Source of the DNA: Octopus sinensis
Lineage: Eukaryota
Assembly (NCBI RefSeq): GCF_006345805.1
Contig: NC_043002.1
Location: forward strand, 105,958,001 to 106,022,000
Length of the DNA stretch: 64,000 bases
Reading direction: 5' to 3'
The translations under genes were made by a program, and so were the position numbers. Under the pieces are notes generated by a model. The model worked only from the letters and a program-made list of their open reading frames with translations, ran no database searches and was not told the DNA's origin. This document shows, piece by piece, positions 4,048-64,000 of the stretch (its first letter is position 1; the number at the start of each line of letters is the position of its first letter).

Positions 4048-5312
4048 GGATTGGGCAAAATAATGGAAACACCTTAAAATTTCAAACAAGTTTATTTTAA
4101 TATGGGGTAGGACCACCTTTGACAGTAATTACAGCTTGAATTCTATGAGATATGGACTCGTACAAAGCTTGAATTGTTTCCAAACAAACTTTTATCCATT
4201 CTTCAGCTAAACAGTCTCCAGTTCTTGTAATGATGATGGTGGAGGATATCGACTCCTTACTTATTTTTCTAAAATGCACCATAAAAATGTTCAATAATAT
4301 TGAGATCTGGGGACTGTGGTGGCCCGATAAGATATTCAACTTCACTAGAATGTTCCTCGTACCATTCAGTAACAACTTTAGCAGTGTGAATTGGTGCATT
4401 ATCATCCTGAAAGATTGCGTTTCCCTCTGGAAACAGTTCTGCAACCCTAGGATGAATTTGATCAGACAAAATGCTTAGTCTTGACTGTTAATTCTGCCGT
4501 GAATGGAAACCATTGGGCCGGCAGATTTCCAAGATATAGTCCCTAAGATCATCACAGATCCTCCTCCATGTTTAATAGTTGGAAAAAGTAGTCTGGGTCA
4601 GATGCTTCTTTTGGCTGTCTCCACACGTATACTCAGCTGGTGGTCGGAAATAAGGTAAAGGATGACTCGTCCGAGAAAATATCATTCTTCCACTGCTCTA
4701 AAGACCAATTCTGTAGGTTTTTACTCCACTCTAAATGCTTTGCAACGTTTGTTTTCGAAAGTAGTGGTTTTTCTGATTGCAGCCCTCTCGTGAAATCCGG
4801 CTTTATGCAGTTCCCAACGAACAGTTTTTATGGAAACTGGGTTCTCAGGGTGGTCATTAAGCTCTGCAGTAATTTTGGGAGCTGTACTTTTATGATCCTT
4901 TCTAACTATCGCGTAAGAGTCTGACAGTCCCTATCTGAAAGTTTTGGTTTTCTTCTGGAGTTTTGTTTCGACGAGGAGGTTTTTCCCTCTTTCTCAAAGG
5001 CTGTCATTACTTTCGAGACAGTACTTCTTGATACACAAAATATTTCAGCTGTTTTCGTTACGCTAGCGCCTGCCATACGAGCACCACAATTTGACCTCTT
5101 TGAAAGTCCGATAGACCTGTCATTTTAATAATTTTAAATTACCTTTTTCTGATGATATCTGAAAAGAAACAGCAATTTTAGCAAAACATATTAAGCAACA
5201 CTAATAATAGATAAAAAAAGATAAAAATAAACAAACTTTTGACGGTTTTATAGATATTTCAAAATTATGATGTTATGATGCTAGGTGTTTCCATTATTTT
5301 GTCCCAACCCTG
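4045..5312 (-). mobile_element. Full-length degenerate Tc1-like transposon with DD36E spacing
   Basis: Inverted repeats of about 29 bp (CAGGGATTGGGCAAAATAATGGAAACACC and its near complement) flanked by TA. Frameshifted transposase from about 5123 to 4097 with N-terminus MTGLSDFQRGQIV, catalytic region FQDDNAPIHT...PPQSPDLNIIEH and C-terminus RIQAVITVKGGPTPY. Confidence 0.92.
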
Positions 5313-21705: not shown

Positions 21706-24063
21706 GTAAATATACATTCTTATAATCTTTTTGACATACTTAGATATGTGTGCCTCTTGACGGTTTTGTATTTTCATGCATTTCTCTGTAGCAGAGGTAG
21801 AACTTCAAACTGCTAAAGGCGTATTGTAAATACGTATAGACCCTTTAAGGTCACATCTGGCAGAGAAAAATAATAAACCTTTAATTTTTACAACTTCACA
21901 TATGATACTTAACCTTTGTTTGTACAGTGAGATTACAATTACTACTATTTGAGTTAGAGTTCTACGTATATTGTCATTATCCAGTAGGCTTTTAATATAG
22001 TGGTTAGTCGCTCACTGTACTTAGCAGTGATACTAATTATGATATTCAGAGCATACGCAGTGAAAATTAAGATAAACACCAGTATAAATATTTAGTTCCT
22101 ATGTACGCAATGGTGAAACGTACGTAGGAACAAAATATTATACTGGTGTTTATCTTAATTTCTATGTTACTTATATTAATTGCTCTGCTTTTGCTTGAAA
22201 GACTTAACCTCTTTTCTCCATGTGGTTCGGCTGGAAATTACAATATAGGCGAGGTGTTTCCTTCCTAGTCTCTTATGCCGTAACATTAGCACATTCCGTG
22301 TCTTCGTGTAAGTGTGTGTGCGCGCCTGCGCATGTGTGTGTTTATGTAGATGCAGTACAGCCAAAAGGTTAGGAAGCTCGCTTCGTAATCACAAGATTTC
22401 GGCTTTAATACTTCTCTGTAGCATATTGATCTTGGGTCTTTTACTATAAGTTTCAGATCAACCAAAGCCTAGTAAATGAAACAGGGTATATGCAATATAT
22501 GCAATCAATTTGGAAATCCGTTGAATACACTGTGACTCGTACTTTGAAGGGCCAGCCATGGGCACAGTGTGCCACGCTGGCTCCACCTCGTAGTTACGTT
22601 TATAGGACACGCGTCCAACCACTAACGCAGTAGTTCAATGTGCAAGAACTTTAGTTAATCGAAAAGAGTGAATATTACTTATTGAAATCAATAGAACTCT
22701 ATTTATGTGTGTGTATATAAGTGCAAGCAAGATTTAGTCTTTTAGTTTTGCTTGCGATATTGAAGTCCTAGGTTCGATACCGCTACGTGACATCTTGTGT
22801 AAGTAGCTCTTATCATAGCCTCGTGAGTGAAACCAGGTGAACGGAAACTATGAGAAAGCCCGTTGGACAGTAGCTATTAGTAAAATTTCAACCTTATCAC
22901 ACATCTGACTCATCCTGGGAATTACGTTAAGAGTTCACGCGTACGTAATTCATCAAACAATTGGAACATTCGTCATCGAAATCAGTGAAGGAACTATTGA
23001 CTATTTATAGAATATATTTTATATAAGTATATGAGCATGTATGTATATGCCTACAAAATACGTATGTGTGTGTGTTGACGTAGCATGGCCAAATAATTTA
23101 GAATTTTCCATTATAATCACTAAATCCTGGGTTCGAGCATTTTGAGTAAGGATCTTTTACCATCGCCTCGGTTGGACCCCACTTTCTGAGTTAAACTGGG
23201 TTAATAGAAATTGTATGGAAGTATGTCGGATGGACTGCTGTAATTTAAAGGACCAGTCTTATCACACTGTGTCACGCTATATCCACCTGACAATTACATC
23301 AGACACACGCATCTGTGGAATACTCACCCACTTACACGCTAATTCAGTGAACATTTAGTTCAATTGATCGAACATCCAGAATAACATCGTCGAAACCGTA
23401 CGAGAATCTATTTAGATATGTGATTGTGCATGTGTGTGTATGTACACATACACATACGCATACACACACACACACACATGTATGTATGTATGTATGTATG
23501 TATGTATTATACATAGCGGTTCTGCAAAAGGGATGACTGAATACGCACCAGGCTTTAAAAATAAATACTGTCGAGTTGTTCGACTGAACTCTCCAAGACG
23601 ATGCTCCAGCATGGCCGCAGTCCAATGACTGAAACACGAAAAAGATAAAGTTGTGGTGTGCGTGAGAGAGAGAGAGAGAGGGGGACAGCGAATTTGTCCC
23701 AACTCTCTGGGGCTAATTTTACCATTATCTTTGTGGGGGTGGATAAAAATGAAAACTCAAGGGATCTAGTGTAGTGGCTTGATGGAAATGGGAAAAGCAT
23801 CGGAGCGATGCATTGCGGTATTTGTACCGACCATGTGTTCTGAGAACAACGTATGCAACGACACTGGCTCCAGCCACATTGGCATCTCCTTTCCCTTGGA
23901 ATGATATCTATAGTGTGGAGAAGGGTGAGAAGGGTAACTTGCATGCATAGGCCACAGCTAATCTTCTAAAAGAAAAAAAGTTTGGTGGGCTGGTGCAAAA
24001 ATATGGTCAATAGAAGCTTGTTATAATGCGTGTATAGATATGTACACATCCAATATTTATGCA

Positions 24064-25673: not shown

Positions 25674-26955
25674 CAGGATGGTGCAGAGACGACGGACGTT
25701 TTTGAAAAATTCACAAAATCATTCATTTTAGCTGTAAGCAAATTTTATTGACATCAATGTATTCGAATTGAATTAGCATTTGTCAAAATCAAGTGTAGAA
25801 AACAACATCCATCATGTGGTGTCCGTTTTTATTGATGCATTTCTGAAGGTGTTCTTGGAAGTTGGCCTCCACTCTCTCCAGCATTGCTCTGTCAATTTGG
25901 GCGACCTCCGTGCGAACCGCTTCCTTCAAATCATCCAATGTACAGGGCTTATACTCATATACACGTGTCTTGACGTTTCCCCACAAGAAATAATCACAAG
26001 TGGACAAATCAGGGGACCGAGAGGTCCAAGGAATATCAGCAAACCTGGAAATGAGGCGGTCACCGAAGAGAGGGTGAAGAACATCCATTGATGCTCTGAC
26101 TGTGTGGGCCGTCGCCCCATCCTGCTGAAACCACACACGTCAAATAGGCATGTGTTGTCGTCGTAATTCAGGCACAAAGAAATTGTTTATCATCTTTATG
26201 TAACGCTCAGAGTTCACAGTAACAGCATTTCTATTACTGTCTCAAAAAAAAGTAAGGACCAATGATGGCAGCTTATCCAACAGCACACCAGACAGCCACT
26301 TTTGAGCTGTACAGTGGTCTTTCGTGCAGTTCTCTCGGATTTTCAAGAGCCCAATAACGACAGCAGTTCTATTGATTCACCATGCCATTGAGATGAAAAT
26401 AAGATTCATCACTCATTAACAAAATTTGCTTCCATCTGACGTTCAAAGTTAAACCGCTGTACATAGTCCCATGGTTTCAACTGTTGCCCAACGACCAATT
26501 TGTACGAGTGGGAATGTAGGTTTTCAGGCAAAATATGCCTTGCCGATCGATTACCGATGCCAAGTTCAGTGGAATGCCTGCGAGCAGAGCGATTTGGATT
26601 CTGTATCAAAGCTTGTCTGACGCGTTCCACATTTTCCTTGGTCCGTACCGTTCGTGGCGCTCCTATTCATTAGTGTACCTCGTGTATGAAGTGCATTCAC
26701 CAACGTAAGATTGTGTTACGGATGGGAACAGCTTAAGTTCAGTAAATGTTGAAGTGGCACCGAAACTCACGCTGAACTGCTGTGACAGGCTCGTTATTCT
26801 TCACGTAACTGTTGTAGGCAAACAGGCAATGCCCTATCGTCTACAGTGTCATGGCTTCACCTGAAAAGAAAAGTTCTAAGACACTACGGACCGAATGATA
26901 CCTGGGGCTGAGTAATAACCATTTCAAAAATGTCCGTCCTCTCTGACCCACCCTG
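25674..26955 (-). mobile_element. Degenerate Tc1/mariner transposon with DD41D spacing (rosa/Visitor type)
   Basis: TA-flanked TIRs CAGGATGGTGCAGAGACGACGGACGTTTTTGAAA and TTTCAAAAATGTCCGTCCTCTCTGACCCACCCTG. Transposase motifs MSDESYFHLNG and WFQQDGATAHT...RSPDLSTCDYFLWG, with 41 residues between the second and third Asp. Confidence 0.9.
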
Positions 26956-29155
26956 TACAATGAATAATCTTTACTTCTTTCATCACTCAACAGTACAATT
27001 TCTATATGTGCACACGCACACACACAATCGTTGTAAAGGTAGTTTAAGTTCGCTTCTCATTCGCAAGTTTTAAGGCTCGGTTTTATAACATAGCATCTGG
27101 AGTAGAGGATCTTTTTCGGTAACCTCAGGTCAATGCATGTGTGTAAAAACCCACTGGATGTATATTTTTCTATAGTTCAAATGTCCAGCCTTGTCTCTCC
27201 GATTTCATCGTACACGTATCTGTGATATATTCAGTCACTTACAGAGTGATTCAACGGGCATTAAGCCCGTTGAATCAGCCTGTGATTGAATTGATAGAAC
27301 GACGGAAAACCCGTCGTCGAAAATTCTGAGCGAGATCCTTTTATTTATTTCAAAGTGATTGTTGAAGTAAGTACTTCATATTGTTGACGTTGATTTAGCA
27401 ATCCTGTCTTATTGACATGTGAAATTTGAAGGATATTTGACGGTTAGTTCTGGAAAACTGGCTGTCAAGTTCAGGTTGCCCATAGAATTGGTTCTAACTT
27501 CTTCTTTAGTGGGCGGATTCGCGTCAATTTTAGAAATCTTTATTTTAGAAAATGAGACAAAATACTTTGGTTTTATTTACGTCCTGCGTTCAAATTATTC
27601 CAAGGTCTAACGTCGGTTTTCATTCATCCGAAGGTGTAGCTGGGTGTCGGTAAAATCGACTGTTCTTTCCATATAAAATATGTGGCTTTTATTCCTCTGA
27701 AGGAGCGTTGAGCGGGGCTGTGGATAAAATCGCTGTTCCTTCAATCTAAAATGTGTGACCTTGTGTGTCAGTAATAGTATTACTATCAGTGTCTCTTCCA
27801 CAAACATTAGGATTCTGATTAATTTGTGCCTCATCCCAATTTACAATGTTGGTGAATCGACATCGGTTTATTTATAATAAATAATTTCTATACTGAAGTC
27901 TGAGCAGGGGAAACAGAGATAGGTAGATAATGTGTATGTGCGCTTCGCTGTACAAACGAGAAACACGTGGTAGAGTTTATATTTCCAAGGCGGTGATTCC
28001 ACTCCGTAGCTTTTTAGTGTTTTCTCTGTCACACATATGTAGGTTTCAACTATTATTGGCCCAGGTCATAGAAAATAAAGTTATTGGTGACCGAAATGTA
28101 TCCGGGTATAGGTGATTTGTCTCGCATTTCTCGAGGAAATCTGAGTAGCATTTAAATTATACGGCAACTTCTTGGGCTTCGTTCGAAACAATGTCGAATA
28201 AAGCAGAAGAACAATTGAGATAGAAACTAGTTGTGTCCCATTGTTATTATGTGATTATATATTTATATATGTATGTTTCATACGAATGAATATTTCACAC
28301 CGACATAGGGATGGAATTAAAATATTTTCTCAGCAAAATTTATGTATATTTGTGCGCGCGGGTATATATATATATAACATGAACAGGTGTGTTGCTTGAA
28401 GTAATTACCTAGTCATGAAATTGCCTTAATATCCTAGTAACATATACATCAATATTAAACTACAAAAGAAATGTAGTTCACATTATAAACTTCCCTTGTA
28501 TATAGCAATGAAATAAATAGATTCTCTAAATAATATATACGCGCAGGTAAATAGTTGTGTTTATTATCACGTTCAAGGTAATAAATACAAAGTAGAAGAG
28601 CACTTTGTTTTGTACCTTTGGGGAAGATTTTTTGTCTCAGTTTTCCGTTACATAAGAAGTTGCATATCCTGTCCATCGATAGTCTTCAGACAGGTTGAAT
28701 TACCTGGACGATATACCTTTGTTTGGATATCATATTCCCTTATCTAAGACTTTTTCTTTTAATTCTATAATATCTTAACAAATTTATTTAATTTTTGGAG
28801 CTGCGTACGGTATTATTACAAAATTTTAGTGAAAGGAATTGGTTATTTGAAGCAAAGCTGTAAAAACCAAAACTTTTTCATAAAGCTAACTGAATATTTC
28901 CACCTATTATAAAATATACATAACGTATATGTTATCCTTGGAGAGAAAAAAAATGTTAGGAATCGAACCCTGAAAAGTTTGATGCGCACTGGATATAATA
29001 AGAACAAAGAAAATGAGATATAAGTTCGACTTCTTCCAAATGCAGATTATAATTTTTTCCCCATTTTTTAGTAAATTTGTTAGCATATGTGTATGCGTAT
29101 ATATTGGCATACATATTTGATATTTATGTATATATTTTTCGTTTCCATTCTACAG

Positions 29156-29197
29156 GTCGACCCTAAAGTAGCATTTCCTAGGAAAGCACAACCAAAG
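29156..29197 (+). CDS. msi: Musashi-family RNA-binding protein, 42-nt exon (end of RRM1 and linker)
   Basis: Acceptor tttttcgtttccattctacAG and donor GTaaag. Encodes VDPKVAFPRKAQPK in phase 0, continuing the previous exon (human MSI1 IDPKVAFPRRAQPK). Confidence 0.95.
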
Positions 29198-32100
29198 GTA
29201 AAGGATATTTATTTTTTTTTTGCTCTAAACTTTGATATGTTTTATATGTTCTGCTATTTTTCTCAAACCTACTTGTTGTTTTATAGTTTGAAACTCATTG
29301 CCAGCATTTTGTGAAATATATACATGCATATTTTTTTTAAATTCCATTATTATTTATGTAATGTGTCCTTGCATAGTCAAGGCCAGATAAAAAATAAAAC
29401 AAAATATTATTTTAAATCTATAAAAATGTGCATATTATTATAAAACGAATAATTATTTATATATGCATACTTGCGTGTATATTCTGACATGAATACTTTA
29501 TTGATGGTATAAAAAGAAAAGTATTTATTTATTTAATAAGTATTCTTCTGAGAATGGAAAATAAAAACATTGTACCAAAAACAAAAAGAACTGTGATGAG
29601 TAATGATATATTTTGTAAATGTTTTTACTAACACACACACAAATATACACACACTCTGAAAAAAAAGACAAAGCATGTCTTGTGGATATGTTGTCTATAG
29701 AAAAGTTATGACTTCAAAACTTACCTGGGATTAAACCTCATCTGGATATTGCTCTGACAGTGCTAAGCTAAAAACTACTTGGAATTCAAACAAATTTGGA
29801 TATTTGTGTTGATAGGAGAAACGTGTATTCAAAACCTGCCTGGAATTCAAACAAATGCGGATATTGTGGTGGTGAATGCACATGTTACCAAGGACTTTAA
29901 CCAGAAAGTTTTTCCACTTAACATGATTTCATAATGACAATATTTTGTCTGCGAGGAACATTTTATCTTTTGTTTATTCCTTCCCCTGCCAAATATAATT
30001 ATTTGGAAATTTTTTAAAATTGACTTTTATAAAAATGAAAAAAATATAACACAATTCCAAAAAAAAAAGAAAAGAAAATTTGAAGTAAAAAGATAAAAAA
30101 CAGTATAAAACAGAAAAAAAGTAAAACTGAATTGTGAAAGTTTTTGAAAAAAAAAACCATTTTATTTACAATTTATATGTTGAAATCGCGTACTGTCTCT
30201 GTTTACAAACCTACAATTTGACTCTCGGAGCTATAAACTGTGCACATAAACATATTAACAAAAATACTCTGTATTTAGTTCCGCCAGTATTTTGTCCCTT
30301 TTACCTTTCGTTCTGAAGCAGTGCGATTAAATAATTATCAAAGTTCTAGATCGATATAAATGACTGAAATCAATAAAAACTATACACATACACACACACA
30401 AACTCTCTCTCTCTGTTGCGACTCCGAGTTATGCATTTTAGACACAAAAACATCCATACAATATTGAAATAAAATGGAACAGCAAACTTTGGATCAATTT
30501 AATTTTTTCTCTCTCCCGGATATTTCTTTAACAAAACGATACAAAGAATAACAGCAACAACATCGGTGATGATGATTGTGCTGATAGAAAAAAAAAATCT
30601 AAGAAATATGACAAACCAATTTTAGCTTTTTTCTTTTTTTTTTTAACTATAACAAGAAATTCCAGCAAGAAGGATTCGTGTTTGTTTGTTTGTTTTTAAT
30701 GTGTGTAAATCTGCAGAGTTCATTTCAAATCGTAATATTTGTGTCAAACAACGGATATTCACTATGAAAACCAAGGAAAAATCTACGAAAAGTTAAGCAA
30801 GAACAACAAAATATTTTCTTTGTGTATTTGTTTATTCATTTTTGCTAAGGAGAATAATAATGGAAATAAAAACCAATCAAATTAATTCTCGAAGATTAAA
30901 AAAGAAACTGCAAATGCTCAAAAGAAACAGGAAGCCAAAAGAATTTTGTAAAACTGGAAATATGACAGAATACATAGTGAAAAAAAAAATAACATCGAAT
31001 GTTTCTGTTATTAAGTCATTTCTTTTACCTTGCCACAAGGGTGATGAACAGGGGGACACTGAAGAAATCAAATTTAAAAAAGAAAAAGATAATAACAATA
31101 CTAATAATGAACACTGTCAAGCAGTGTTGGATGTAATACTTCACTAAATTTGAGTTGATTTGTGGTTTTAAAAAATTTCAGTTTTACTTAAGCCGATAAA
31201 ATAAACTGATATAAGGGCCAATTCGATAACTACCTACCCGCATTATAATTACATCAACCCTGTTGATGTTGTTCTTTAAACTCAGATGTCCTGTCTCTTA
31301 CTCAGAAATGGTGCATTTTTAAGACTACTGTATCTTTCCATTTTAAAGATGTGCGCGCGCGCGATATGGTGGATATTTGGCTACTATTGATAACAGGATG
31401 AATGATGCCACTTCCACACCGTATCCGTTCCCTCATCAATATGTATATCATTATATTAGACGGGTATTTTCATATACAGTAATGTGGTACAGCGGTGGGC
31501 GTAGTGTTGGTGGGTATATTGCTATATAGAAAGAGGTATGGTAGAGTAAATATGTTGCTGTGATAACTCTTGTCAATATCTGAGTTGCTACCTTCCATAC
31601 CTTTGTATAAGTACCAGTTATATCCCGAGTTCGATTCAGTCGTCGATTTATCCCCAAAACTTTTTCCTCCCATGTATATTTCTTGCGTTGTTGTTGTTGT
31701 TAGGGCGGTTGTGGGGTAGTAGTTACAACCTTTGACCTTCTGAATAAATGTCGACGATCGACTTCGTATGACATCTTTGTTCTAGCCATGACCAGCCATT
31801 TTTTTCATCCAGTGTCCTTAAGACAGAAGGGTGTAATTGGAGGGAGAAGTACCTGCTATTTTTAGTAGGGAGAACGACTGAGTTGACATATTGTTATTGG
31901 TGTTTAGTTTCATATCAGCCTTGCCCCTCCCGACTTTTTAAGAATATTTAACACTATATTATCTTATACTTTTCCTGTTTTAAGACAACAGTATGTGATT
32001 TAGCTGCTATTTCTAACCGGTTGATTTATCACGTCGAGCAAACGAAGGAGCTCGATGTACCAGTAATCTACTGATAGTGAATCGATCAACTTATTCCTTT

Positions 32101-46696: not shown

Positions 46697-48150
46697 TATC
46701 ATCATCATTTAACGTTCACTTTCCATGCTGGCATGGGTTGGACGGTTTGACTGGGGACTGGTGAGCTAGATGGCTGCACCAGGCTCCAATCTGATCTGGC
46801 AGAGTTTCTACAGCTGGATGCTCTTCCTAATGCCAACCACTCCAAGTTTTATGTACCACCGGCACGAGGGCCAGTCAGGCAGTACTGGCAACAGCCACGC
46901 TCAAATGGTGTTTTTATGTGTCACCTGCACAGAAGCCAGTCCAGCGGTACTGCCAACGCCCTCACTCGTATGTTTTTCAAATACCACCGGCACAAGTACC
47001 AGTAAGATGACGCTGGTAACGATCACACTCGAATGATGCTTTTTATGTGCCACCGGCATGAAGGCCAGTCAGTGGCCATGGCAACGATCACACTCAGATA
47101 GTGCTCTTTGCGCTTCACTAGCACGGATGCCAGTCATGCGGTGCTGTCATCGAATTTGATTTTGATTTCACTTGTCTCAGCAGGTCTTCGCAAGCAGAGT
47201 TCAGTGTCCAATGAAAGAAAGGTATGCCTAAGTGGACTGGTTAAACCACTGGCATAGGCCACAGGCTATGGTCTCACTTGGCTTGCCAGGTTTTCTCAAG
47301 CACAGAATATTTCCAAAGGTCTCAATCACTAGTCATTGCCTCAGTGAGGCGTAATATTCGAAAGTCGTGCTTCACAACCTCATCCCAGGTCTTCCTGGGT
47401 CTACCACTTTTACAGTTTCCCTCAACTGCTAGGGTGTGACACTTTTTCACACAGCTATCCTCATCCATTTGCACCACTTGACCATACCAGTGCAGTCGTC
47501 TCTCTTGCACCCCACATATGATGCTTCTTAGGTCCAACTTCTCTCTCAAGGCACTTACTCTCTGTTGAGTATGCACACTGACATTACACATCCAGCGGAG
47601 CATATTGGCCATGTTCCTTGCAAGCTTACGCATGTCCTCAGCAGTCACAGCCCATGTTTTACTGCCATATAGCATGACTGTTCGTACACATGCATCATAC
47701 AGTCTACCTTTTACTCTGAGCAAGTGGCCCTTTCAGGGAGCAGAGGTAGGAGCTCCCTGAACTTTGCCCAGGCTATTCTTATTCTAACAGCTACACTTTC
47801 AGAGCACCCACCCCCGCTACTGTCTTGGTCACCTAGGTAACGGAAGCTATCAACTACTTCTAGTTTTTCTCCCTGGAATGTGGCGGAAGTTGTTCTCTGC
47901 GCATTTTCAGTGTTTATTGCTCCTGAGCATCTGCCACATACAAAAACTATCTTCCTAGTTAGCCTTCCTTTGATATTGCTGCCCCTCTTATGTGTCCATA
48001 GCTTACACTGGGTAAATCTTATAGAGTTTCTACCTCTTACTGAGTTTCTACCTTCTTATAGAAAAAATTTCGTCTTTGTATCTGGTTTGCAAGATTCTTT
48101 ATGTGAACTCATGTGTTGAAGCAAATTATGTGTCTTGGAGAGTCATAGTG
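46697..48150 (-). mobile_element. 5'-truncated RTE-clade LINE (second family) with 3' UTR and (GAT)n tail
   Basis: ORF 47322-47723 (KGRLYDACVRTVMLYGSKTW...RRLHWYGQV...GRPRKTW), preceded by LEVVDSFRYLGD and CKLWTHKR motifs. The 3' end is CCAACCCATGCCAGCATGGAAAG followed by GAT repeats. Confidence 0.88.
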
Positions 48151-57510: not shown

Positions 57511-60281
57511 CTTTTATCCACTGCGCGTGTGTTTGTGTAGTAAATTCTTACATACAAACATACATAGATGTCATATTGTCTGTATGGGCATCTCATAAAA
57601 TATGCATGCAAAGCTGTGTGATAACATCACCATAAACACAATATCAATATTATGTTATAAAATACACCCTCCAGAGATATCAGGAAAGTGTAATGAAATC
57701 TTGCAATATACTGATAACAATATGTTGATAACAAACCACCAAAGAAACGGGAGTTATCTGATGAAGCAGAATGGCTGTGTAGTTAGTCACTCCATAGCCA
57801 CATGGTTCCAGGATCAATCCAACCACATGGCTCCTTGATCAAGTTTTTTTTTTATTATAATGGAATTTGGCTGAGAGAACTGCAGAAGCCGTGTGTGTGG
57901 TAGGGTACCAAAGTAATCTCACAGAAACAAACTTTGATAATTAAATTCAAAAAGACTCCAAATTTAAATTAAAAATGGGATTATTTTGTAGGTATGTAGA
58001 TTCCAACAGTTTTTTAAAATACAGTAACACCAGCATAACCACTATCATAACGTTCACTCCATGTGGAGATGGAGAAGTGTATGTTACACACAGATTTCTG
58101 ATAGAAGCCTAGATCCCTGTTCAATGAAAATATATATAGAGTATATTTATTTTCATGTCTCGATTTCCAAGTACCATTCTGTTAACACTATTTTTATCTA
58201 TTGTATATTGTTCTGAAATTTGAATTCTCTCTTTTTCCTTGAGCCCTTTGTTAAACTCTTGCTCAAAGAAATATTTTCGTTATATCTTCAAAATATTTGT
58301 TATCACAGATGTATATATGTATGCGTACCTTTTGTGATGTATATTGGTGAAGAAAACTGAGATGAAAACAGTGCTTTTAAAATCAAGTCCTTGTTACATG
58401 TTCTGCATTAACTTACTGGTACTCCCTTGTTACTGACATCATCATATATGCAATGAACTTGTGATTAGCACCTTGGAAACCTACAACCAATGATGGTTTT
58501 ATTCACAGTATGAATGATAAAAATAAATAATGCAGACCCATTTTGAAGTGGAGCCAGATGTACCAGATTTACTTTGTTCTTTATTCTTTACCCTTCATTA
58601 GAAAGTGTGTTTCATTGTTGAGGGGAGGGGGAATGTAAGGGAGTAGTCTGCCCCTGAGGATTTTTATTTATTTAGCTGTGCAAAGTATGAGTAATACACT
58701 CTGAAAAGCAATAACTACTGAACTGGATAATGTCATTTATGTTTAGCCCCAGGTTAACTCTGAATGGGCTGACCTATGATCAAAGTCATTCTGCCCAAGA
58801 TCATTCGGTCTTACATCATCCAATGTGTCCCCTTCTAATGTGATGGATTGTGGTTTAAGGGGGATTTGGCTGTTATTTCTAACAAGTTGACCAATGCTGT
58901 CCAATGTTCATTGAGGAGTGTTTTAACTAATGAACTTGTCATCTCTGGTGTTACTGACTATACTCTTTAATTAACAATTCTTAAAAATTTGTTTTAACGT
59001 GTTTAATGAAGTCAGAATAAAAAGAGTTTAATTTGAAAATATTACATAAGAAATTTCTAATATTGTTTAGCTCAGCAAACATTGGAATACAACTGCAGAC
59101 ATGTTTTGGTCTTAGTAGATTTTATCTGTGAATCATGAACGTCACAGTACTTCCTGAAACAGTGATGGTTAAATCAGTTAGTAGACATATAATACTATAC
59201 AGGAGTGAAAATGAACAATTTGAATATTTAAAAATGATAAATCATTGTTAATTGTTCTTTTTTAGCCCTAGGTTAGTCTTAATCCATCAAACCTATCATC
59301 AAAAGTATTCCAGCTGTGTGCATTTTATATTCTATTCAAACATAGTATACACTATACAATGTAACTTTTGATATTTATTTAACCCCCAGATTAATCCTAA
59401 TCAAGCAGAGCAATGATCAAAAGCATTCTAAGTGTGGCCATTATATCTTGTGTTGTGGGAACTCAGGGTCACATTAGCCAATGTATTTTTTTTAATGTTT
59501 AATGTTGAAGGATGATCTGAGGGAGACTTGGATGTTATTTGTAACAGATTGAGACAATGTAAAGGTTTCCTTATTGCCAACATTGAACTAGATAATAACA
59601 AAGATGCCTTGAGCTTAATTGTCCCCAAGTTTTCTAAGTATAACACCTGCTGTTGCTGACATCTGGGACAATGTCTTCCGTCAAGTTTTGTTAAAGCAAA
59701 ATTTTTTTACCATACTTCTGTCATTTCATCACTCCAAGACAACCTATTATCTCTAAAATATTGTGCTACCACTTTCTTCTTCATTCTCTTTTCTCCTTCA
59801 CCTCCTCTATATCATGCAAGGATATGTGCAGCCCTGAAAATGGAAAAGTTCTCTGACCTTGCTTAATGCACCCACTTCAAACCTCTTGAGACAAAGAGAA
59901 ATCTTCACTGATGAATGAAAGTGGTCTCCACATAAATCCAGCTTATGTAGTTGCCTGCCTACTTCACTCCTATAAACCCTACATTTAACAATACCTAATC
60001 CTTACATCTCATGTATGTACTCTCCTTGACTCCATCTTTACTAACAATCAGATTTATGATTACTATATTTCCTGTTTTCTTAGAGTAGTACAAAAACAAA
60101 AATTGTTTTTGTTTATGTAAAAAGCTCATTGAACTAATCTCAGTGTACAACTTCAGTCAACTGAAAATTTAGATACAGAAAAATGTAACCAACTACTTCT
60201 AGAAATTGTAATGATTGTGTCGTTCCTATAATCATAATTTGCTTGTTGATATTGTTACAGCATAAACACCAATTGTAACTT

Positions 60282-60400
60282 GCATCCTTACACTGTATCC
60301 TAACACACATCCTTACACTTTATCCTAATACGCATCCTTACACTGTATCCTCTCCCATATTTTTATATTGTATTAGACTTCACATCTTTACATTGTATCA
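60282..60400. repeat. Degenerate minisatellite, unit about 23 bp
   Basis: CATCCTTACACTGTATCCTAACA-like unit, three good copies and two decayed ones. Confidence 0.85.
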
Positions 60401-60528
60401 TGAGTGAGCGCTATCATAAATTTTATCTTAATACTGATATATCACCATGACTTAGCAAAACTTGTGTCTGCTATATGTTGTAATTAAGACCTGTTATAAT
60501 TCTCTTGTTCATATTATGGCATTGTAAG

Positions 60529-60559
60529 ACTAAATTTTTTTTTTTTTTTTCAGGTGAGT
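60529..60559 (+). other. Candidate recursive splice site (3' splice site immediately followed by a 5' splice site) in the long msi intron
   Basis: Branch-like ACTAAAT at 60529-60535, 16 consecutive T (60535-60550), CAG (60551-60553), then GTGAGT (60554-60559), all on the msi sense strand. Confidence 0.6.
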
Positions 60560-61014
60560 GGCACACTAAAAACAAATTGGATTTTAACACCTACAACAAC
60601 AGTATGGTATTTCTCTCTCTCTCTTGCTAGTGACATTGCTGTTCCTCCTGCCTGTCTTGTGTATGTATTTCAAATCAAATTAATACTCACCCAACAGTAA
60701 AAGGATAGATACATTTACTTATTTGCGTATGAAAAACAGAGGGGGATAAGTTCATCATACAAGGTTAAACTTCTTTGAAGAAAGCAAGTACCTAATACAC
60801 TTGTAGAGCAACAATTATGTATCCAAGGATTTCTACACAGGCTGAAATTAGTAGTCCCTGTGAGCTACTGAATTTCTCAATACCCATAATAAAATATACA
60901 AATGTACGTAGTTGGAGATGCCTGACTATATGTATTGAGTCCCTGCCTCCTGTTAAAATTTCTTGTGGATGTTTTATCTTAGAACATTTCCTTATATATT
61001 GGTTCATAAGCATC

Positions 61015-61460
61015 ATAATCATTTAACATCTGTTTTCCTTGCTGGCATGGGTTGGATGCTTTGACAGGAGTTGGCCAACAGAAGAGCTGCCTGGGTTCCA
61101 TGTCAGTTTTGGCACAGTTTCTACAGTTACATGCCTTTCCTAAAGTTAATCACTTTACATAGTGTATTGGGTGCTTTTACACAGCACCAGCACATGTGCT
61201 TTTACATGGCACTGGCTTAGGTGTTTTTTACATGGCACCAGCACCCATGAGCCCACAACCATGATGTTACTTAGCTTCACATGTCTTCTCAAGCACAGCA
61301 AACTGCCAGAATTCTCAGTCCCTTGTCATCCTCTCTGTGAGATCAAACATTTGAAGATCCTTTCTAAGCAATTTATCTCACATCTTCTTGGGTCTACCCC
61401 TTCCACATATTACCTCCACAATTAGAGATTGACACTTCTTGATGCAGCTGACCTCATCCA
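61015..61460 (-). mobile_element. RTE-clade LINE 3' end (related to 46697-48150)
   Basis: Shared 3' end GCTGGCATGGGTTGGA; reverse translation DEVSCIKKCQSLIVEVICGRGRPKK. Confidence 0.78.
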
Positions 61461-62269
61461 GAAATTTCTGGAGAAGTTGCTATAAGCTTGTTATCTATCC
61501 AAGAGATTTGTATCTTCACATTCAACAAACATGTTGGCCACGGATACATGAACCGCTAATGTTGGAGCATTACAGACTGTAAGAGTGGCAGTGAGGATGT
61601 GTTAATGTGGTAAAGCAGTGAGGATGAGCTGTTATTGTGGGCTGTCAGGAAATGTAATTGCTAAGCAGAGATGAGGATGTTTTTCATTATTTTTCTGTTG
61701 GATATGATTTAACTCCCTTCCCAGTATGCTTCACAGGCAAGAACTGTCTACAAATTCAATCCAGAAATACATGACACCTGCTACTTGCTAGGAATACAAA
61801 CCAAATCTTCAAAAGTACATCGTTCCCTTTTAAATTAGGAAAGAAACAAAGGAGAACATTACCTGAGTAATGTTGAATAAAAGATGAGGCGGTTACAGTT
61901 GAAATAGCTTTTATGATATATAAGCTGATTCAAGGCTAACCTGAGGCCACACAGCAACAACTCTAAACACAGGCAAGACTCCTTACTTCTTTCTTCTATC
62001 TATGCTTTGACACAAAGCATACAGACTTATTTTTGCTGAGAGGGTAGTAACCTTTCTTCACCATATAATTGCTACTACTCTAGGCATCTTGGAATAGGAC
62101 ACAATTAATTGTCCATAAAGTTTGAATGGATTGGAAGAATATTACAGCTATTTATTCCTGCTGTCAGTTCATTCTCTTGTCAGCAGCCAATCTATTAGGA
62201 CAGACACCAATAATGATGATGTCTTGATAGTAATATTAATGCCTTTATTATAATAATAATCCTTTCTAC

Positions 62270-62517
62270 TAAAGGCACAAGGCCTGAAGTTTTGGGGGAA
62301 GGGAGTAGTTGATTACATCGACTCCAGAGTTTCATTGGTACTTATTTAATCAACTCTGAAAGTATGAACGGCAAAGTCGACCTCAGCGGAATTTGAACTT
62401 AGAATGTAAAGATGGACAAAATGCCACGGCAAAGTCGACCTCAGCGGAATTTGAACTTAGAATGTAAAGATGGACAAAATGCCACAAGGCATTTCATCTG
62501 GTGAGCTCACTGCCTTT
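62270..62517 (-). mobile_element. SINE family B with an internal tandem duplication of about 58 bp
   Basis: GGCAAAGTCGACCTCAGCGGAATTTGAACTTAGAATGTAAAGATGGACAAAATGCCAC occurs twice in tandem. Confidence 0.85.
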
Positions 62518-62537: not shown

Positions 62538-62649
62538 ATGCTTACAGCACCAAGGTTTCCTAAGCAGTCACCCATCTAAGAACTAACTAGACTCAACATT
62601 ATAACTTCAGTGAATCAATGAGAACTGGTGCATTCAATGTGATATGGCC
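62538..62649 (-). pseudogene. Decayed 5S rRNA copy (pseudogene or 5S-derived SINE head)
   Basis: Reverse complement GGCCATATCACATTGAATGCACCAGTTCTCATTGATTCACTGAAGTT...GTTAGTTCTTAGATGGGTGACTGCTTAGGAAACCTTGGTGCTGTAAGC is colinear with metazoan 5S rRNA. Many of the differences fall at CpG sites. Confidence 0.85.
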
Positions 62650-64000
62650 AAATTTGGATAAGTACCAAAGATTTGGGTAGAGGCAGGGCTGCAGTCAATT
62701 TAACCAATGCCAGTATGTGACCAATATTTATTTTATCACACACCACTCCCCCACTTTGGAAGGATGCATATCAAAAGTTGACTTGAGTTGGATTTGAACT
62801 CAGAATGTAAAAGACAATTTTTTTAAATGTCCATTGTTCTCCCATTTCTACTAATTGCTTCTAATAGGAGCACAAGGCCACAAATATGAGAATAGCATAT
62901 AGCCAATTGAATCCAAGCCCCATTAGGCATATCTTTTACCATAGCTACACATTGACCAATCCCTTGAGTGGAATTTGATAGATAGAAACTGTGCAGAAGC
63001 CTGTCATATGTGTCTATCATTATAGGTTCACACAGATGCAAATTGCAATGAAGTGAAGAAAGTACTCAATATCATTAGGTAGAGTGGAATAACATACACA
63101 TCTGTCTGTATGTGTGAATGTTTGCAACTTCTTTTCACATAGCATGATGGTAGTAAATGAGTGTCACTATCATACAAGGCCCTAGAAAGAGTCCTGAGCA
63201 TTGTCTTCTCCTAAGTGATTAAAAAAAAAGTCTCCCAAAAGGATTATAGCTCAAAATAATAATTATTTTATAGTATAGCTGGTTAGGTTAGATTTAATGC
63301 AAGCAGCCATGGCTGTGTGGTTAAGAAACTAACTTTGAATCTACAGAGTTTTGAGTTCAATCCCACTGCAGTACACGTTTGGCCCATATCTCTGGGTTGA
63401 CCAAAGCCTTATAAGTAAAAATTACATGGATAACAAATGTATGGAAACCTTTAACATTACCTTTCCTGTTTTGAGACCAGACTTGATCTACCACCTGGTT
63501 TAACACCACCACATGGCCCTTAGGAAACTTTAGCAGAGTCCACATTGTTACAAGTACTCAGACCTGGTGTGCAGTCTAAGAATCGTTTACTTTCATTCTC
63601 CTACCAGTCTCAGAGGTTTTGCAAAGGGTCATAGGCACTTCCCTACATCCCATATCTTAAGTCTGTTGTAAACATAAAGGCTCATTAGGCCAGAGCTGAT
63701 CTCAGTTTCCAAATCAACAGAGTACAATAGTCTCACTTATAATGGGACACCAGTCAGCCATGAGATTAACACTCAGCTGAATAGACTGAAGTGTTTTGCT
63801 CAAGACCACAATATATTGCCCAGTCTTTATGATGAGTCAAACACCCTAACAACAAGAGGCCTTTCCTCTGAGTAAGCCACAGGTGAAAAACTGATCCTAA
63901 AGCAAAATCGACTTCAGTGAGAATCAAACAAAAATTTCTTATAATAGTGGGAGTAAGTAATGTTTGTGGAAAGGTGGGAATGGAACTCTGTTGGTTTTGA

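Follow-up and report, generated by a model that had tools for sequence, protein, structure and literature searches.

A candidate recursive splice site in the long Musashi intron of Octopus sinensis

Musashi exons and the long intron

A stretch of 64,000 nucleotides (nt) from the genome of Octopus sinensis (assembly GCF_006345805.1, contig NC_043002.1, positions 105,958,001 to 106,022,000 of the forward strand; hereafter the window, with positions counted from its first letter) carries part of the Musashi gene msi, and deep within one msi intron lies a run of 16 T followed by CAG and then immediately by GTGAGT, a strong acceptor abutting a consensus donor in the arrangement of a recursive splice site, or ratchet point. 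Searches by tblastn with Musashi and octopod proteins, human MSI1 among them, place msi coding sequence of the window in exactly two exons, which both lie on the + strand (Table 1). The upstream one is bounded by the acceptor ...ttctctccag/ and the donor ACG/GTAAAT (a slash marks the splice boundary here and below), whose GT lies at 21706, and its product is 100% identical to the O. sinensis protein P0155. The downstream one ends in ...CCAAAG at the donor AAG/GTAAAG. The residues encoded by both are 100% identical to Musashi homolog 2 of O. sinensis, Octopus vulgaris, Octopus bimaculoides and Argonauta hians.

In octopod Musashi proteins the peptide of the downstream exon, VDPKVAFPRKAQPK, is followed directly by MVTRTKKIFVGG, which belongs to what is called here the MVTRTKK exon. 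With octopod proteins as queries, tblastn gives no match in the window to this exon or to residues 105 onward of octopod Msi, and the intron that opens at 29198 must therefore be at least 34.8 kb long. It holds transposon fragments and zero msi coding exons. As annotated, msi covers 214 kb in O. sinensis and reaches 269 kb in O. vulgaris and 312 kb in Argonauta hians. P0155, the RefSeq model of O. sinensis, begins MVMKDPATKRS and is without the first ~50 residues of the O. vulgaris, O. bimaculoides and Argonauta models (P0239 and P0240 were compared), so the 214-kb range is probably an underestimate. Exon 29156-29197 itself opens with GT after its acceptor (cag/GTCGAC, 29154-29161) and is thus formally an AG/GT site; its donor half is very poor (-5.7 bits on the weight matrix described below), which makes re-splicing there unlikely.

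Table 1. Features of the window on which the argument draws, with their positions, strands and the basis of each call
Feature	Position	Strand	Basis
msi exon, C-terminal part of RRM1, (R)+28 residues	21621-21705	+	tblastn with human MSI1 and octopod proteins
msi exon, 42 nt, phase 0-0, encodes VDPKVAFPRKAQPK	29156-29197	+	tblastn
Long msi intron, between RRM1 and RRM2 coding exons	29198-64000, continuing beyond the window end	+	no downstream exon match
Candidate branch-point sequence ACUAAAU (putative)	60529-60535	+	sequence read
Polypyrimidine tract, T16, uninterrupted	60535-60550	+	sequence read
CAG acceptor	60551-60553	+	sequence read and weight-matrix score
GTGAGT, candidate regenerated donor	60554-60559	+	sequence read
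Candidate cryptic exon, 48 nt, frame-preserving, encodes VSGTLKTNWILTPTTT	60554-60601	+	translation, stop-free
Weak candidate donor ACA/GTATGG, would end the 48-nt exon	60602	+	1.4 bits
Weak candidate donor ATG/GTATTT, would end a 53-nt frameshifting exon	60607-60612	+	-2.0 bits
Candidate donor TGT/GTATGT, would end a 107-nt frameshifting exon	60661-60666	+	2.4 bits, best downstream donor
Candidate donor GTAAAA, would end a 143-nt exon	60697	+	-0.8 bits
LINE-like 3' end, ORF2 C-terminus remnants (GRGRPKKM..DL...)	61012-61460	-	self-BLAST, six-frame translation, by eye
Transposon remnants	25789-26136, 4097-4444, 47322-47723; also 61012-61460	-	by eye

The candidate splice site and its surroundings

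ACTAAA-T16-CAG/GTGAGT occupies 60529-60559 on the + (msi sense) strand. The putative branch-point sequence matches UACUAAC at five of the six positions that pair with U2, and the presumed branch A, read from the sequence as 60533, would lie at -21 relative to the first base after the AG. Every position from -4 to -19 is T, which places TT at -5/-6, and from 60554 onward the sequence reads GTGAGTGG. The initial annotation had drawn attention to these letters, to their distance of 31.4 kb from the donor at 29198 and to the lack of any Musashi exon in between; the letters agree one for one on the + strand, the computed distance into the intron (29198 to 60554) is 31,356 nt, and tblastn with octopod proteins found no Musashi exon along the way. 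Ligation of exon 29156-29197 to the site is predicted to produce ...GGAAAGCACAACCAAAG/GTGAGTGGCACACTAAAAAC, and the resulting AAG/GUGAGU could form eight consecutive base pairs with U1, from -2 to +6, if the G at +3 is taken as a wobble. A k-mer spanning this predicted junction reads CCTAGGAAAGCACAACCAAAGGTGAGTGGCACACTAAAAACAAATTGG; the unspliced exon-intron sequence likewise continues with GT (GTAAAGGA).

How strong is this site against the background of its own neighborhood? When all AG/GT sites on both strands (n=424) are ranked with a generic acceptor-plus-donor splice-site weight matrix, it comes first, at 17.0 bits against 6.8 for the second. Its acceptor half, at 12.2 bits, outscores both real acceptors of msi, which reach 11.1 and 8.6, and among 3,580 sense-strand AG sites only the CAG at 60551-60553 reaches 12 bits. 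The donor half scores 4.8 bits against -0.2 for the donor at 29198, the one real donor that could be validly scored. The exact pattern Y12-N-CAG/GTRAGT occurs once in the 128 kb of both strands, where component frequencies lead one to expect ~0.001 per strand; allowing up to two mismatches brings the count to 2, where shuffles that preserve dinucleotides average 0.21. An empirical estimate that treats the acceptor and donor halves separately, and so retains the actual frequency of T runs, puts the expectation at 0.0003-0.005 sites per strand. The parts themselves are less rare: the + strand has 11 T runs of at least 10 nt, three of which reach 16, and the GTRAGT hexamer is found 19 times on the sense strand and 30 times on the antisense strand. 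The coincidence of acceptor and donor inside the msi intron is therefore unlikely and is strongly non-random for the window. The initial annotation had argued as much from the observation that only a handful of long T runs occur here, and within the window the expectation per strand bears it out.

Two asymmetries between the strands accompany the site. Acceptor-like sites of at least 8 bits are more frequent on the sense strand of the window (15) than on the antisense strand (6), and long T or A homopolymers of the msi sense strand are more often T than A, by 11 to 6 at 10 nt or more and by 4 to 1 at 12 nt or more. This excess is consistent with tolerated intronic antisense poly(A) elements or with a transcription-linked mutation bias.

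Downstream of the AG, the two donors proposed at the outset, for exons of 48 and 53 nt, are both present, and two further candidates lie at 60661 and 60697. On the same generic matrix GTGAGT outscores all four. Since the donors of the candidate cryptic exon are much weaker than the regenerated donor, skipping of the exon is predicted, and with skipping octopod protein models free of an insert are to be expected. This is what is seen: neither VSGTLKTNWILTPTTT nor any other insert at AQPK/MVTR is present in five octopod Musashi protein models (O. sinensis, O. vulgaris isoforms X2 and X4, O. bimaculoides X2 and Argonauta hians). Protein searches seeded with the hypothetical cryptic-exon or junction peptide returned nothing matching; one of them reached only proteins of 71-128 residues, one was dominated by vertebrate MSI2, and an X-padded query retrieved octopod proteins. 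Among 1.84 billion representative proteins, the one match to a 66-residue frame across the site is weak, of low complexity and not meaningful. None of the 20 intronic open reading frames (ORFs) within 10 kb of the site was found in the protein collection, and a metagenome scan for the site motif gave no match.

Could the T run be the relic of a repeat? Neither self-BLAST nor nhmmer detects within the window a second copy of 60000-61500 or of 60400-61011 around the site. The 30 nt that precede the T run have no 8-mer in common with the following 3.4 kb, and there is thus no target-site duplication within that distance. The fragment at 61012-61460, which resembles a long interspersed nuclear element (LINE), is related to a copy at 46698-47467 (ORF 47322-47723); it stops ~460 nt downstream of the site, and the copy shows no homologous continuation past the point that matches 61012. 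With no copy, no target-site duplication and a LINE-like fragment that ends at 61012, a retroposon tail or other repeat origin of T16 is unsupported within the window. T runs are more numerous than A runs on the sense strand, so an old and decayed antisense element could still have been its source, and an origin as an antisense retroposon tail is compatible with any reading of how the site is used.

Other features of the window are of a more general kind. About 200 nt upstream of the site, at 60282-60351, a 25-nt unit, GCATCCTTACACTGTATCCTAACAC, is repeated in tandem ~2.8-5 times. A full-length match to 5S rRNA lies inside the msi intron at 62539-62655 (- strand; 56 bits against a gathering score of 38), and it is adjoined at 62368-62485 by a perfect tandem duplication (58 bp x 2) with a motif resembling a tRNA T-arm; together they may represent a 5S-derived short interspersed nuclear element or a 5S pseudogene. 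Inspection by eye also identifies ORFs of mariner-like transposase C-termini (MWFQQDGATAHT...) in the introns, and C-terminal fragments of LINE reverse transcriptase (...GRPRKTWDEVVKHD...) in two related copies.

Proposed use of the site and competing accounts

Taken together, the features of 60529-60559 suggest that it may be a used intronic recursive splice site of the octopod Musashi RRM1-RRM2 intron, a reading put forward tentatively, as a good possibility that stops short of being probable. With the RNA polymerase ~31 kb into the intron, U2AF and U2 would recognize ACUAAA-U16-CAG, probably assisted by exon definition across a cryptic exon of 48, 53 or 107 nt with its weak donor. Exon 29156-29197 would be spliced to 60554, the first 31.4 kb would leave as a lariat, and the new AAG/GUGAGU donor would beat the weak donors of the cryptic exon and be joined to a further recursive site or to the MVTRTKK exon, which lies past the window end. 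Because the regenerated donor would itself be re-spliced in this proposal, the mRNA would keep no trace of the event. The interpretation is mechanistically ordinary, as the spliceosome needs no special factor for such a site. It was already that of the initial annotation, and its descriptive part holds: the site is on the + strand of a long intron, joins the two consensus sequences, is followed by weak donors, contributes no exon to octopod models and belongs to no detectable repeat. That it functions is what we infer from these features.

Several considerations weigh against recursive use. All of its support is drawn from features of the sequence, and functional ratchet points are ultraconserved. 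The candidate is a single motif, picked by eye in one window, and is subject to a look-elsewhere effect: an expectation of ~0.001 per 64 kb per strand translates into tens of chance sites in a genome of a few Gb (2.7 Gb). Apart from the candidate, the weight-matrix ranking of the window shows no sense-strand excess of good AG/GT sites, and it thus offers no independent sign of recursive splicing in the octopus genome. The donors of the cryptic exon are all weak, which makes exon definition uncertain. The T16 homopolymer is unstable, possibly young and atypical when set against a mixed C/T tract, and it may have originated as an old retroposon's tail in antisense. Repressors that block U2AF, such as hnRNP C in vertebrates, also bind long U runs.

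The simplest competing account is a chance juxtaposition, in which a T homopolymer happens to precede CAGGTGAGT and the site, under no selection and possibly repressed, is ignored or used at the level of noise. It seems on the unlikely side, while deserving to be taken seriously. T runs are fairly common on the + strand, tens of such sites are to be expected genome-wide, and the window has no other good sense-strand candidate; within the msi intron, however, at most 0.005 are expected, and the acceptor, the branch-like site and the donor are jointly near-optimal, so that the spliceosome would be expected to see the site unless it were actively blocked. Experience from humans points the same way, as ENCODE taken as a whole contains junction reads for 60% of the conserved AGGT sites that have strong acceptors and lie in long introns (PMC6110456). 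If the T16 derives from the poly(A) tail of an old retroposed element inserted in antisense, with its body from 60551 onward on the minus strand, the acceptor-like signal would be a by-product, silent or mildly deleterious, much as in antisense-Alu exonization. The surplus of T over A runs on the sense strand and a neighborhood rich in minus-strand retroelement fragments fit this idea, which is unlikely all the same: it would leave unexplained the missing target-site duplication of 8 nt or more within 3.4 kb, the lack of a second copy of 60400-61011 in the window, the end of the LINE fragment at 61012 with no homologous extension in its other copy, and the absence of any related ORF among the 1.84 billion protein representatives.

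Two further accounts keep part of the motif and discard the rest. The site could be the acceptor of a conventional cassette exon, whether alternative, poison or cryptic, in which case the leading GTGAGT would be incidental or only occasionally re-spliced. The 48-nt version is stop-free and in frame and would put 16 residues into the RRM1-RRM2 linker, the 53- and 107-nt versions would shift the frame and lead to decay, and lineage-specific isoform inserts occur at exactly AQPK/MVTR in the Musashi/Rbp6 proteins of many animals, including a 13-residue cassette in a decapodiform (P0243). None of the five octopod models carries an insert, though, the searches seeded with hypothetical peptides found no match, and the donors that would end the exon score far below the regenerated one, all of which makes a cassette quite unlikely. 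Alternatively, the functional unit could be no more than CAG/GTGAGT, a U1-binding site that shields the pre-mRNA from premature cleavage and polyadenylation, or else a feature of the minus strand (a CACCTG E-box), with the T run irrelevant in either case. Long neural introns depend on U1 telescripting, and CAGGTGAGT pairs with U1 over nine positions before any splicing; yet GTRAGT is common on both strands and this occurrence is special only through the acceptor fused to it, while nothing supports a minus-strand gene or element at the site. This last account is very improbable.

Musashi relatives and known recursive sites

To our knowledge, demonstrations of recursive splicing come from insects and vertebrates only, and we know of no study of how very long neural introns are processed in cephalopods, a group whose large brains and very long neural genes arose independently. 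The initial annotation had called recursive splicing undescribed in cephalopods, and a literature search agrees: among the papers searched, nothing links it with cephalopods, octopus or molluscs beyond unrelated, passing or reference-list mentions. If validated, the octopus site would extend recursive splicing to Lophotrochozoa and make msi the third Musashi-family gene with recursive processing, and the combination of branch site, U-tract and CAG/GTRAGT would serve as a template for a genome-wide scan of sense against antisense strands. If the site turned out to be unused, it would show that a motif can be near-perfect without sufficing, and would suggest that long U-tracts are repressed.

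Data or candidates now exist for three Musashi lineages, namely fly msi with a validated recursive-splicing exon (RS-exon), human MSI2 with read-supported sites, and the octopod consensus site. Drosophila msi has an expressed RS-exon, named msi87 and mostly included in mRNA, whose recursive splicing was demonstrated by reporters with mutations in the ratchet-point donor; judging from the primers (primer gGTCAGTATCGG...), it opens with the donor-like sequence GTCAGTATCGG... (Joseph et al. 2021, PMC8605326). From the primer name we take the exon to be 87 nt long. In contrast to the octopus candidate, the fly RS-exon is included in mRNA, and fly msi has diverged further than its paralogue Rbp6. 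No homology is implied between the fly and octopus sites. In human MSI2, junction reads support two candidate recursive sites in a 128-kb intron at chr17:55478832-55607036 of hg19, and one of the two shows a saw-tooth pattern (Zhang 2018, PMC6110456 Tables S2, S3). Both genes are likened to octopus msi by family and not by matched intron position. It is conceivable, if improbable, that stepwise removal of giant Musashi-family introns is an ancient bilaterian habit and that the octopus site is the first lophotrochozoan example of a genome-wide cephalopod program for long neural genes.

In many animals, predicted Musashi-2/Rbp6 isoforms contain inserts of 8-77 residues exactly at AQPK/MVTR, which are specific to their lineages and unrelated to one another (for example P0026, P0028, P0033, P0035, P0148, P0162 and P0207), the carriers including pika, hamster, mouse, cuckoo, frogs, lungfish, oyster, mussel, bees, beetle, caddisfly, ticks and mites, in searches whose query design favored isoforms with inserts at this point. 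These inserts mark the orthologous intron as a recurrent source of cryptic or alternative exons and are not evidence for recursion. The decapodiform cassette, in JGI transcript P0243, places DSDSYDQTQVTLE between AQPK and MVTRTKK; it has no donor-like codon pair at its start, and no counterpart of it is found within the octopus window. Arthropod inserts that start with VS or VR (P0146, Apis, Diorhabda) were considered as signatures of RS-exons and rejected, because read-through of a normal donor or an alternative downstream donor explains them equally well.

Cryptic acceptors made by antisense poly(A) tails of retroposons, as in exonization of the Alu type, are repressed by proteins that bind U-tracts, and they share with the octopus site a long uninterrupted U run directly before an AG deep within an intron. 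They differ in what surrounds the run: the octopus AG is followed by a consensus donor, and the searches around it detected neither the body of a retroposon nor a target-site duplication or a repeat copy. Vertebrate RS-exons of long neuronal genes, said to have been described by Sibley in 2015, are a second comparison. Like them, the octopus candidate lies in a long intron of a gene for a neural RNA-binding protein, would depend on exon definition through a cryptic RS-exon, and would reconstitute a donor stronger than that of the RS-exon; unlike it, the human sites were called by conservation and reads, and their host introns are usually longer than 100 kb.

A further comparison is with the ratchet points of Drosophila, which have reportedly been found in Ubx, kuz, Bx, luna and other genes, in studies attributed to Burnette in 2005, Duff in 2015, Joseph in 2018 and 2021, and Pai in 2018. 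Within this comparison the octopus site does not resemble the expressed RS-exons of Ubx mI/mII and fly msi, its exon being absent from the five octopod protein models; it resembles recursive sites of long introns, those of more than ~10 kb, since it lies in an intron of at least 34.8 kb and is used by no octopod protein model. The fly ratchet-point set was defined by conservation and RNA evidence, whereas the octopus site is known from its sequence. The octopus donor is GTGAGT where flies prefer GTAAGT, its tract is a pure T16 where fly tracts are mixed, and its host is a lophotrochozoan, a group in which the mechanism has not been described.

Fly ratchet points combine a fused acceptor and donor with a prominent pyrimidine tract and strong conservation, mostly in neural genes (Duff et al. 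preprint, 10.1101/006163), and the octopus site likewise juxtaposes a strong acceptor and a donor at AG/GT on the sense strand, within an intron of tens of kb in a neural or developmental gene. TT is found at -5/-6 in 196 of 197 fly ratchet points (10.1101/006163), as it is in the octopus tract. Fly branch points map at -36 to -21 (10.1101/006163), and the presumed octopus branch A, at -21, would fall at the near edge of that range. For recursive sites in general a branch point ~20-50 nt before the AG is expected, and there too the presumed A would be at the edge. Fly host introns measure 11-133 kb and the removed segments 2.6-63.6 kb (10.1101/006163), a span that includes the 31-kb first segment of the octopus intron. 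Joseph et al. 2021 (PMC8605326) showed that a fly site needs a cryptic exon that is short (~50 nt), weakly conserved and in most cases out of frame; nothing of the octopus candidate exon appears in octopod protein models. The regenerated donor is stronger than the RS-exon donor both in the fly (PMC8605326) and in human cells (PMC6110456), and the same relation would hold at the octopus candidate, where GTGAGT outscores the weak donors of the putative downstream exons.

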